Sequence record: NC_027364.1
Direction: 5' to 3' (one strand)
DNA: 64,000 bases
Shown: piece by piece, positions 37,458 through 40,042 of the stretch
Layout: each line of letters begins with the position of its first letter
Position numbering within the stretch: the first letter of the stretch is position 1
Notes under the pieces: generated by a model
Database searches by the model: none
The model's input: the letters and a program-made list of their open reading frames with translations, nothing else
Told to the model about the DNA's origin: nothing
Translations under genes and position numbers: made by a program

Positions 37458-37886
37458 TTAGTTAATAATAAAGGTAATTTCAGGATTCATTTCAGAAACT
37501 GCATTGCGTTTACTTCTATCCCATAGTATTCTGTTATTATACAAAGAAGAATCACATACTACAAGTAAGCAATTTCTTAATCTACTTACAGTACTTTGAT
37601 TATTTAAATCAGTTTCTGAAATAAAAAATACATTTTCAGGAACTACTAAAGGAATAGATTTATCAAAAAACAAAACTACAATAGGTCTTGTTGTATGAAC
37701 TGATTTAACGAAATCCAAAATACTATTATAAAAATTAGTTTCTTTAGTAATTACTGACGGATCTTTAATTCTTTTCAAATATTGCTGTGGTAGTTGTTGT
37801 TCGTCTTTTATCTGAAACTCAAAATATTCTTTGAATAACATTTGTGTTAATTCGGATTTATCGGATATTTTCGTTGTGTTACTCAT
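37458..37886 (-). CDS. Hypothetical protein
   Basis: 142-aa ORF. Confidence 0.65.
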   Translation of the reverse strand: MSNTTKISDKSELTQMLFKEYFEFQIKDEQQLPQQYLKRIKDPSVITKETNFYNSILDFVKSVHTTRPIVVLFFDKSIPLVVPENVFFISETDLNNQSTVSRLRNCLLVVCDSSLYNNRILWDRSKRNAVSEMNPEITFIIN

Positions 37887-38540
37887 TCACTTCGTTCTCT
37901 CGTAACTCAAGAAGTCACTGCGTTTACTTCGTAAACTAGTTCCTTCTGAAAATGATAATGTACTTTAAAAACTTGACGGGATTTGTTGAGGACTATTACA
38001 TCCCCCCGCAGGGGAATGAAGGTAATAAAAAAGAGACAATTAAGTCTCTCTTGACGATGATGGCATCGGATATTATCGAATTGCGAATTTCTCAAATTTT
38101 GGACGGATCTTTCTTGTACCAAAATTTAGAGAGCGAAAGCGGGTTGCTCGGTTTCTCTCTATCGCAGTCATATGCAACGGTCGCTGGTCTTTTCATCAAC
38201 AGCACTCAGTACTAACTCTATTCGATCAAAGTAGTACTTGTTCTCAAATTTTGGACGCAACTTTCTTGTAAAAATTGCGTCCGCTATTCTTGAACTCCCT
38301 TAGCAAATCTGGTAAGGTGCGAACCTTATACATCTATCTAGGAACTCTCTGTATGCTTATCGGAGTTCTTTATACAGCCGTGTCGCCGTGATTCGTGGTC
38401 TTACATCGTGTTTGTTTGAATGCCAGTACTCTAACAGGTTTCTTCTGCTGTTCGCTACAACGGTAAAGCTCATCTATCCTTTACATTTTCAAGAGAAGTA
38501 GGTTCTCAGTGTCCATTTTTCAATGTCCGTTGTCATTTTC
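37887..38540. other. Hairpin-rich non-coding region (candidate replication origin or large structured RNA)
   Basis: About 650 bp with no credible gene, more than 10 inverted repeats, GNRA-type loops and a 30-bp near-identical direct repeat (38089, 38241). Confidence 0.6.
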
Positions 38541-38547
38541 TATATAC

Positions 38548-38576
38548 ATTATATCATTGGAACATATAATGTCCCA
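38548..38576 (-). promoter_or_regulatory. TGGGAC-N17-TATAAT promoter pointing into the non-coding region
   Basis: TGGGAC attatatgttccaatga TATAAT. Confidence 0.7.
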
Positions 38577-38975
38577 TTACATGTATACTTTTTTTAAATC
38601 CTTAGAACAACGATCAAAAATTGTGTTTATGAATTCAACATCTTCGATAATATTCGAATCGTTAGCAACATTTTCATTTCTTGTCGTGTTCCTATATGTG
38701 TGTTCAGGATGATTGTATACCACCTTGACTACATTATTTAGGTCTATAAAATTTGACGTTTTTTGCGTATAGGAAGCCTGAAGCTTGATGAGTTTACCAT
38801 CATTCTCAAGATTGGTTTTATGAATTAGTTCTTCAATACCAGTTAAATGGCTATAGCTATCTTTTTCTTTTACAAAAGTAATAGTAACAAGAACTGCTTT
38901 CTCATCTCCCATATCGGAAATGTTTTTTACAGCACTGATAATTTCTAAGTTTGAAAAATCTAATTCTTTAAGCAT
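38577..38975 (-). CDS. Hypothetical protein
   Basis: 132-aa ORF. Confidence 0.65.
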   Translation of the reverse strand: MLKELDFSNLEIISAVKNISDMGDEKAVLVTITFVKEKDSYSHLTGIEELIHKTNLENDGKLIKLQASYTQKTSNFIDLNNVVKVVYNHPEHTYRNTTRNENVANDSNIIEDVEFINTIFDRCSKDLKKVYM

Positions 38976-39385: not shown

Positions 39386-40042
39386 TCAATCATGTTTATT
39401 CAATTTCTTCTGTTCTTTTTTCAAAGCTTTCATATGACGACCAAACTCTCGAACATGCCATAGATGATCGGTTTCCCATAATTCTTGACGTAACCTACGT
39501 TCTTCTAGTAGTTTCGACTTGTCAATGTTATTTTTCTTTTTTTGTACATTAAAGAAATTATTCATATGTTCTTGGAGAAGATTACGACCTTTAACTTTTT
39601 CAAGAAACTCATCAACTGTTTCAGTTTTATTCGAACGTAGTTGATTACATCTGGAGCACATAGTATTAAAGTTTGACTCTAAATCAGGTCCACCCTTAGA
39701 TGCCAGATGATTATGGTCAACTGTCATTAAAACTTCATAAAGACCACATACAGCATATACATTTAAATGTGGTTTACCATATACTGGATCAGAACATAAT
39801 GAACGTTCAATGCGTACTTCAGTAGCTTCAATCCCACATGCCACGCATTTTGGATTCTTAACAAAAGTAAGAACTTTTTGTGGGAAATATCGAAAAGTAA
39901 TACCATTTAAAGTGTAGCGTTTCATCTTAGTACTTCGTTGATTTAATTCTTCAAGAAGTGATAATTTTGTCGTATAGTAAACATGATATTTGTTCATTTT
40001 ATTCCTTGATATTGATTTTAATATCTTTACCTTGTAAATCAC
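39386..40042 (-). CDS. Free-standing HNH-type endonuclease-like protein
   Basis: CVACG ... TVDHNHLASKGG.D...NFNTMCSRCNQLRSN. Confidence 0.75.
   Translation of the reverse strand: MIYKVKILKSISRNKMNKYHVYYTTKLSLLEELNQRSTKMKRYTLNGITFRYFPQKVLTFVKNPKCVACGIEATEVRIERSLCSDPVYGKPHLNVYAVCGLYEVLMTVDHNHLASKGGPDLESNFNTMCSRCNQLRSNKTETVDEFLEKVKGRNLLQEHMNNFFNVQKKKNNIDKSKLLEERRLRQELWETDHLWHVREFGRHMKALKKEQKKLNKHD

Follow-up and report, generated by a model that had tools for sequence, protein, structure and literature searches.

What occupies 690 unannotated bases of a jumbo-phage genome? The window analyzed here is a stretch of 64,000 nucleotides, bases 1-64000 of Escherichia phage PBECO4 (NC_027364.1; 348 kb, Asteriusvirus, a Rak2-like jumbo phage), and its coordinates are those of the record. 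The gap, at 37887-38576, is flanked by the minus-strand genes gp056 (start 37886) and gp057 (stop 38577), and its G+C content is 40%, against ~30% in the flanks. Larger unannotated gaps exist elsewhere in the whole PBECO4 record, for example at 151710-153706. A preliminary description of the window had read the gap as a plus-strand, hairpin-packed, non-coding region that is either a replication origin or an undescribed large structured RNA. As detailed below, the feature is real and unusual and the two candidate classes were the right ones; the strand, several of the stems and an argument built on G4-type DNA hairpins were wrong.

The gap is non-coding

The only candidate gene in dispute was an 87-aa open reading frame on the plus strand. 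Phages Turkey5 and A4 have orthologous copies in which the start codon of this frame is gone and stops or frameshifts interrupt it. Substitutions at the three codon positions number 9:8:3 and 16:10:11, with no excess at the third position, and the paralogous copies differ by indels that are not multiples of three, leaving no conserved reading frame. The absence of annotation and the interruption of the frame in Turkey5 and A4 bear out the earlier view that the gap is non-coding, and the frame can be dismissed as a real gene.

Covariation points to a minus-strand RNA

A consensus fold of 40 minus-strand sequences predicted 62 base pairs, 41 of which show compensatory changes. A curated model of 82 pairs, which includes two pseudoknots, is 97.1% paired across 40 sequences, and 57 of its pairs covary; when the 3' partners were slid as a control, only 37-44% were paired. 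In an extended set of 56 sequences (≤92% identity, bacterial islands and metagenomes included), pairing amounts to 96.7%. Compensatory pairs thus stand well above their controls, as they do in structured RNAs.

The cells of the curated 82 pairs comprise 2852 Watson-Crick pairs, 202 G:U pairs on the minus strand, 17 A:C cells, equivalent to G:U if the plus strand is read, and 75 others. Single-sequence folding is stronger than expected by chance, with minimum-free-energy z-scores of -4.45 (minus strand) and -2.49 (plus strand). The RNA is assigned to the minus strand because of the wobble counts and the stronger z-score, and a plus-strand model was ruled out on the same two grounds. Two other comparisons did not separate the strands: a test on the pairs predicted for both strands, which drops majority-wobble pairs, and a symmetric search for helices, weak long-range ones included. 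Contigs of wastewater metatranscriptomes cover genes and gap alike, at low depth and without direction, and the run that covers them best is probably one of DNA. On the comparative evidence, the gap very probably represents a minus-strand RNA gene.

The preliminary description had called the plus strand from GNRA loops and G.T pairs, and both arguments fail. It had also drawn on d(GCGAAAGC), a mini-hairpin of the kind found in the phage G4 origin. This octamer occurs in only a few copies and is mostly replaced by ACGAAAGC or ACGGAAGC. Read on the minus strand, its bases are paired as the 3' side of helix P11, which covaries. The version of the origin idea that relied on G4-type single-strand DNA hairpins is thereby refuted. 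That the gap is a plus-strand DNA element with G4-like hairpins, or the gene of the 87-aa protein, is therefore extremely improbable. GCGAAAGC and several GNRA-like loops can indeed be read on the plus strand of the window copy, and the frame exists, but the comparative data contradict both ideas, in the wobble counts (17 vs 202) and P11 covariation for the former and in the broken frame and missing codon-position bias for the latter.

Architecture of the predicted RNA

Alignments of the copies define an RNA of at least ~570 nt with ~14 conserved helices, two of them pseudoknots (Table 1). P9, which forms the second pseudoknot, pairs in all of its variants (GUUGC/GCAAC, GUCAU/AUGAC, GUUAC/GUAAC and GUUGG/CCAAC). 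Between the helices, several unpaired stretches are invariant: GAUGAG, GAAACCCG, CACGGCAAUGCGGC, GAUAGACAUAUAAGG, UAAGGGAG, CGACCGUUG and AACCCGCUU. Two further candidate long-range pairings, of GAUGA with UCAUC and of the 3' CGUCAG with a 5' segment, lack covariation in the alignment and are not part of the model. The P13 hairpin with its U6 tract looks like a weak intrinsic terminator, which the terminator scanner did not call because its stem has only 2 G-C pairs. Some copies without P13 have a hairpin and a U-run directly after the promoter instead. Covarying hairpins located 70-110 nt past the conserved end overlap promoter-like sequences of the downstream genes, and related 3'-flank hairpins also follow other phage copies and island copies.

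Table 1. Features of the gap and of the predicted RNA, listed from the promoter towards gp056
Feature	Coordinates	Strand	Remarks
RNA-gene promoter	38548..38576	-	-35-like TGGGAC 38571-38576; extended -10 TGATATAAT 38548-38556; predicted start ~38541
Conserved RNA core, ~570 nt	37972..38541	-	P1 to P14; ends in invariant CAAAUCCCGUCAAG (37985-37972)
P1	38533-38527 / 38463-57	-	encloses variable hairpin, P1b and P1c region (38457..38533)
P1b	38501-38491 / 38481-74	-	irregular hairpin; conserved loop GAAAAnGUA
P1c	38469-67 / 38456-54	-	covarying
P2	38451-47 / 38378-74	-	inner P2a 38437-34 / 38389-86, plus variable insert
P3	38368-63 / 38347-42	-	hairpin, gaactc/gagttc; 6/6 pairs covary
P4	38328-25 / 38316-13	-	hairpin, taaggt/acctta; covarying
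P5	38295-93 / 38242-40	-	bears insert
Module copy 2	38241..38276	-	inside P5 insert; contains ggacgcaa/ttgcgtcc hairpin
P6	38238-27 / 38220-08	-	hairpin; covariation score 21
P7	38226-20 / 38081-75	-	pseudoknot with P6 loop AUCGAAU (38226-20); seven pairs, score 10, wobble/mismatch 0
P8	38204-02 / 38184-82	-
P9	38178-74 / 38147-43	-	second pseudoknot, into P11 loop
P10	38166-62 / 38086-82	-	part of pseudoknotted centre (38075..38178), with P9, P11, P12 and 3' strand of P7
P11	38159-55 / 38139-35	-	covarying GAGAG:CUUUC, GGAAG:CUUCC, ACUGG:CCAGU
P12	38132-30 / 38092-90	-	bears insert
Module copy 1	38089..38126	-	inside P12 insert
P13	38048-44 / 38037-33	-	hairpin, covarying, then U6 (38032-27); in ~55% of copies
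P14	38014-11 / 38006-03	-	hairpin CCCC-UGC-GGGG(GG); nearly invariant; U:G variants fit minus strand
3' flank	37887..37971	-	A+U-rich spacer, hairpins 37922-37936 and 37889-37915; reaches gp056 start codon
87-aa ORF	37952..38215	+	non-gene: disrupted in relatives' copies

Many of the twelve stems first picked out in the window correspond to parts of this model, five of them to core helices of the family. The core helices P3, P4 and P6 had been seen as gaactc/gagttc, taaggt/acctta and agtacta/tagtact, and all of them covary; tcccc/gggga is P14, which is conserved and varies only as wobble pairs, without covariation, and agagac/gtctct is P13, which covaries in those copies that have it. Other stems are real hairpins but lie outside the core: ggacgcaa/ttgcgtcc belongs to the variable P5 insert, aaattttgg/ccaaaattt to the copy-specific P12 insert, and gtttac/gtaaac to the 3' flank, where it recurs as ATTTAC-GAA-GTAAAT in a Serratia island. 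The stem cgatg/catcg occurs in only part of the family. The remaining proposals do not survive alignment: agagag/ctctct, drawn around GCGAAAGC, is a mis-pairing, as CTCTC pairs with GAAAG in P11 and the AGA of agagag with the TCT of ttctc in P12; gtaaag/ctttac and gagaa/ttctc exist in this copy only and conflict with the covarying P1b and P1c.

The direct repeat reported earlier was confirmed (38 bp, 89% identical) and represents two occurrences of a 28-38 nt peripheral module (ACAAUAUAGAUCCGUCCAAAAUUUGA). In our reading of the alignment, the module is present exactly once in 36 of 40 family members, in either P5 or P12; the window copy has it at both positions and PBECO4 copy 4 has none. A stricter regular expression found it in 27/40, one of these with two. 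A peripheral module that can change place is a typical trait of RNAs that adopt a defined three-dimensional fold.

A promoter shared with replication genes

The preliminary description had noted a TGGGAC-class promoter on the minus strand at the right edge of the gap. The promoter is real, but it does not merely fire across the region, since it drives the putative RNA gene itself. A consensus scan reads it as GGGACA-16-TATAAT with a TG extension, and all aligned copies have TG(A/G)(A/G)AC-N13-15-TGnTATAAT on the minus strand in the same place. In PBECO4, this class has 18 sites, none of them on the plus strand, where shuffled sequence would lead one to expect 0.5 sites in all; those found precede the ssb, primase, exonuclease and late-sigma genes and all four copies of the RNA. 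Plus-strand promoter-like sites are no more frequent than expected by chance. The class is the same as the divergent RpoD-like promoter described for phages CBB and GAP32 upstream of DNA-synthesis genes (PMC5259590), and from that work we infer that it belongs to the middle timing class.

An RNA that begins just after a promoter, upstream of co-directional genes at three of the four PBECO4 loci, could be a cis-acting leader, which either alters the polymerase (processive antitermination, as for HK022 put) or controls the long co-directional arrays downstream. The terminator-like hairpins within or beside the unit and the extension of the conserved unit to the gp056 start codon are in line with this idea. 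We consider it unlikely, given that known antiterminator RNAs are only about one-eighth as large and that many copies have promoter-like sequences of the downstream genes between the RNA and those genes. Moreover, copy 4 is directed into the 3' ends of plus-strand genes, and in some copies a hairpin and U-run stand ahead of the RNA body, which is therefore unable to act on them.

Diverged, co-oriented copies in jumbo phages

The whole PBECO4 genome contains four diverged paralogous copies of the element, in one orientation, at 37.9-38.6, 93.6-94.2, 195.0-195.6 and 304.9-305.5 kb. With the gap as sole query, blastn returned 72 phage records, all Rak2-like jumbo phages with 3-5 places apiece, whose hosts belong to Escherichia, Salmonella, Klebsiella, Cronobacter, Pectobacterium, Yersinia, Serratia, Erwinia and Xanthomonas. 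Matches to the non-coding core in distant genera have 67-72% identity, while the flanking genes are undetected by blastn. Both fold and promoter are kept across the Rak2-like jumbo phages sampled. Within the phage collection, the element is carried only by jumbo phages of 320-385 kb and by no small phage; no homologue was found in the plasmids searched. One GenBank record annotates a copy as 'repeat_region'.

Pattern scans of viral contigs found 4-5 copies per jumbo genome, co-oriented within every contig without exception. PBECO4 copy 4 has plus-strand genes around it, with a baseplate hub gene on one side and endonuclease VII on the other, yet retains the common orientation, and Serratia phage BF and Salmonella phage Munch have a copy at the same locus. 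In a tree, the copies of the GAP32/CBB/Yersinia/Serratia clade sort into four or five orthologous groups, to each of which a genome contributes about one copy, and orthologous copies keep syntenic positions across genera. The PBECO4 copies c1, c2 and c4 group together and not with the orthologous groups of other genera. In some lineages, copies were re-seeded or homogenised, and the tree as a whole indicates that copy number is maintained despite some turnover. Free-standing HNH endonuclease genes are found near c1 and c3.

Could the element be a non-autonomous mobile element or homing passenger that merely encodes, or resembles, a structured RNA? Such an origin would account for its spread in phages and in the bacterial islands described below, and it would fit the multiple copies in unrelated replicons, the separate clustering of three PBECO4 copies and the HNH genes close by. 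Against it, neither terminal repeats nor target duplications bound the copies, a transposase or partner protein is likewise lacking, orthologous copies are syntenic across genera, and the fold is under strong purifying selection in every copy. This explanation is very unlikely.

Homologues in bacterial islands

A pattern scan in which each species was represented by a single genome recovered seven full-length homologues outside phages, six of them in Enterobacterales assemblies: a Serratia fonticola chromosome, a Serratia sp. assembly, Enterobacter chinensis, the strain RIT714, a Buttiauxella MAG and an Enterobacteriaceae MAG. The seventh is on a 2.8-kb contig binned as Clostridium. Among 5426 complete E. 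coli genomes, two have a homologue. The homologues sit near the edge of AT-rich islands (32-38% G+C in chromosomes of 55-60%) of roughly 10 kb with defence cargo, and one island type is 83% identical to a copy on a 349-kb jumbo-phage contig. Islands are usually arranged as follows: an integrase of the tyrosine or large serine kind, the RNA unit preceded by a promoter of the class seen in the phages, a CI-like S24 repressor, a Cro-like protein, cargo and a small resolvase. No CI-like repressor was seen in the E. coli and S. fonticola islands; the former adjoins ffs and the latter encodes two ParB-like proteins.

The E. chinensis island (L157, ~10.5 kb) is the only one that was read end to end. 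It comprises a serine integrase, the RNA, a CI-like repressor, a Cro-like protein, DarT with an ADP-ribosylglycohydrolase, a UvrD-like helicase and a resolvase, and over its full length no recognisable replication-initiator or structural genes were found. Judged by this island, the elements have the features of satellites, being small and equipped with an integrase and a regulatory switch while lacking structural genes. In Pseudomonas, a jumbo phage moves islands that carry an integrase and defence cargo without transfer genes, such as I55 (PMC12595487); those islands are different elements, and no RNA is mentioned there.

Relation to described RNAs

At gathering thresholds, Rfam 15 gave no match in the 64-kb window. 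With E-values of up to 10, positions 37600-38900 gave only chance matches to snoRNAs and miRNAs with E above 1. At six island loci, the sole matches were a TPP riboswitch and STnc450, both unrelated to the element. The families covered include GOLLD, ROOL, OLE, raiA, HEARO, tmRNA, RNase P, group I/II introns and 6S; the identity with GOLLD, ROOL or tmRNA that had been put up for checking is thus not borne out, and ARAGORN found no tRNA or tmRNA. RNA-seq of the distant relative PA5oct revealed four ncRNAs (PMC7318152). The element shows no homology to ncRNA001, 002 and 004 of that phage by nhmmer at maximum sensitivity, and the PA5oct evidence is therefore not transferable to it. Literature searches returned no description of the element. 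The earlier suggestion of an undescribed large structured RNA is thus upheld by the compensated pairs, the absence of an Rfam match and the frame broken in relatives: on comparative grounds, the element is an undescribed family of large pseudoknotted RNAs.

An origin RNA or a molecule acting in trans?

We tentatively favor the view that the transcript is a cis-acting structured origin or pre-primer RNA; an ornate RNA or RNP acting in trans is almost as likely. In the favored view, the promoter would be turned on together with the replication genes, and the structured transcript, acting in cis at its site of synthesis, would activate or pre-prime several origins dispersed over the genome. The folded RNA may promote a stable RNA-DNA hybrid or a primer near the conserved G-rich 3' part and the A+T-rich DNA beyond, and islands with the same unit would be copied by the phage replication machinery upon infection. 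This view draws on the dispersed copies held at 3-5 per genome despite turnover, on their co-orientation even inside a block of opposite-strand genes, on the promoter class shared with replication genes and on the capture of the unit by islands, the sole fully read of which is apparently without replication genes. PBECO4 encodes RNase H-like proteins; an antisense regulator like RNA I was not seen. The GC skew of the whole genome tracks gene orientation and is uninformative on origins; its global minimum near 308 kb falls on the strand switch beside copy 4 and is inseparable from it.

Several observations speak against an origin. T4-type origins need no conserved RNA fold; the DNA past the conserved end is only moderately A+T-rich; P13 may simply terminate a discrete RNA; and the invariant loops and relocatable module are more in keeping with a molecule that functions through its own fold, whether ribozyme, RNP or ornate RNA. 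It is accordingly quite possible that the folded molecule is itself the product, acting in trans as a ribozyme, the RNA of an RNP or a ROOL/GOLLD-like self-assembler, and supplied abundantly by several gene copies at the middle stage of infection. The islands might then hold a copy for their own use or for interfering with the phage. Invariant single strands and junctions, the two pseudoknots and a module that occurs once at either of two positions all suit such a molecule; P13 and U6 could set a discrete 3' end, and multi-copy co-oriented genes are typical of abundant structural RNAs. Of the large conserved RNAs that comparative work has uncovered, nearly all are known to act in trans. What an action in trans does not by itself explain is the retention of 3-5 diverged copies at dispersed, partly syntenic places and the orientation kept by a copy inside an opposite-strand gene block; nor does it sit well with a most conserved 3' segment that lies beyond the terminator-like P13, or with the absence of a consistently adjacent gene for a protein partner.

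A bolder form of the origin reading, which we hold to be rather doubtful, would make the unit a portable 'RNA origin', in which promoter and pseudoknotted RNA recruit the phage replication machinery anywhere. The phage would use 3-5 of them for its 350-kb genome, and small defence islands, apparently devoid of replication genes of their own, would have captured one and be amplified, perhaps packaged, on infection by a Rak2-like phage. If so, these islands would be the first satellites of the Rak2-like group, recognised through a common non-coding RNA rather than a protein.

Significance

RNAs that are large, highly conserved and of unknown function are seldom found, and every one to date has led to new biology. 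All the Rak2-like jumbo phages examined have the RNA predicted here, among them coliphages able to infect E. coli K-12, such as phage Sharanji with its identical copy, and its genomic pattern of co-oriented copies, co-regulation with replication genes and island capture points to testable roles. Should it be an origin RNA, it would reveal how 350-kb phage genomes start replication, and would be the second natural case, after ColE1, of an elaborate RNA fold that controls priming. Should it act in trans, a new ornate RNA would be at hand in a pair of host and phage that is amenable to experiment. In both cases, its presence in islands suggests that jumbo phages and mobile defence islands are connected in a new way.

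Comparison with known systems

Large ornate RNAs: GOLLD, ROOL, OLE and raiA resemble the element in length (500-800 nt), in their many conserved helices and unpaired stretches, in being often borne by phages or prophages and in having been found by comparison. Some large ornate RNAs assemble into multimers, and large phage-associated RNAs of unknown function exist (PMC12286853), a precedent for action in trans. The element differs in giving no cmscan match to these families, which are not known as 3-5 co-oriented copies with stage-specific phage promoters.

Operon leaders: HK022 put and EAR are likewise cis-acting structured RNAs located right after a promoter at the head of long operons. They measure ~70 nt and ~120 nt, respectively, in contrast to ~570 nt here, where downstream promoter-like sequences often follow.

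Phage satellites: The small AT-rich islands share the satellite pattern of PICI, PLE, PICMI and I55, with an integrase, usually a repressor, and defence cargo. Unlike PICI, PLE and PICMI, which have replication genes of their own or protein genes in common with the helper, the islands have a non-coding RNA unit in common with the phage.

T4 origins: T4 oriF and oriG consist of a middle-mode promoter and an unwinding element, and plasmids that carry them replicate on T4 infection. PBECO4 belongs to a T4-related lineage, and its element shares with oriF (uvsY) and oriG (gene 34) the presence of several sites per genome and a middle-mode promoter that also serves replication genes, the timing class here being the one deduced above. 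The replication of T4-origin plasmids on infection would explain why islands captured the RNA unit. The T4 origins are short (promoter plus ~50 bp unwinding element) and without a conserved RNA fold, whereas the element has a ~570 nt structure that covaries across genera.

ColE1 RNA II: ColE1 RNA II is a structured pre-primer of ~550 nt whose fold decides template hybrid formation and priming. The element has a similar size, its own promoter and a G-rich 3' part, and thereby resembles a long pre-primer of the ColE1 type, a likeness without homology. The two have no sequence or Rfam relationship, and the jumbo-phage RNA, for which no RNA I was seen, is set apart by its 3-5 copies, two pseudoknots and many invariant loops.

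Promoter class and genome layout

The sequence TG(A/G)(A/G)AC-N13-15-TGnTATAAT occurs at 18 sites in the whole PBECO4 genome, against 0.5 expected, and all 18 lie on the minus strand. It precedes the genes for ssb, primase, exonuclease and the late sigma factor, as well as the four copies of the RNA, and is probably a middle or replication-stage promoter of PBECO4. Two of these RNA copies, 1 and 3, have a free-standing HNH endonuclease gene nearby, and homing might have contributed to the spread or homogenisation of the copies. Beyond the window, eleven paralogous ‘regulator of chromosome condensation’-like genes form a plus-strand block that breaks up the minus-strand gene array, with an inverted local GC skew.

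Hairpins and motifs of the RNA unit

In the window copy, the motif CGUCA(A/G) is present twice, with hairpins P13 and P14 between the two occurrences. Because the A/G variant switches in parallel in both motifs in most genomes, the sequences suggest that the two may have a common ligand rather than pair with each other. RNA copies devoid of P13 carry instead a strong hairpin followed by U7 immediately 3' of the promoter, ahead of the RNA body, which could be a terminator for the upstream gene, a 5'-end stabiliser or an attenuator.

The 3' flank of the window copy contains covarying hairpins, found elsewhere 70-110 nt 3' of RNA copies (e.g. in the analysed sequences L010, L008, L047 and L037), in the forms GUAC-AACGAAGUGA-GUAC and UUGAC-stem-loop-stem-GGCAAAU. 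They overlap putative promoters, sigma70-like or of the TGGAAC type, that would serve the genes downstream; the spacers in these promoters are palindromes with arms that co-vary from copy to copy.

Coordinates of the features (L, analysed sequences)
Feature	Location	Remark
Promoter-class sites	window 8466, 27478, 38576, 63703	minus strand
CGUCA(A/G) motifs	window 37972-37985, 38056-38064
3'-flank hairpins	window 37887-37971
Promoter-adjacent hairpin + U7	L002:30150-30195	PBECO4 copy 2; also L037, L046, L053, L034, others
HNH gene gp059	window 39386-40042	within ~1 kb of copy 1
HNH gene gp353	PBECO4 193714-194502	within ~1 kb of copy 3
Chromosome condensation block	PBECO4 157841-170100	plus strand
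UE-S1 element	ON568341.1 311377-311865
Island, Enterobacter chinensis	L157:5909-16400
Island, E. coli LR-29-1	L159:9950-20300
Further islands	L077, L076, L075, L066, L071

Annotation and bacterial islands

One GenBank record, of phage UE-S1, labels its copy of the element ‘repeat_region’; several others draw short hypothetical ORFs across it. The RNA unit also resides in AT-rich integrative islands of ~10 kb, together with an integrase, a small resolvase, defence-type cargo and, usually, CI-like and Cro-like regulators. One cargo set comprises DarT, an ADP-ribosylglycohydrolase and a UvrD-like helicase; others consist of ParB-like pairs or DUF4326/DUF488/dual-OB genes. These RNA-bearing islands may be satellites of Rak2-like jumbo phages.
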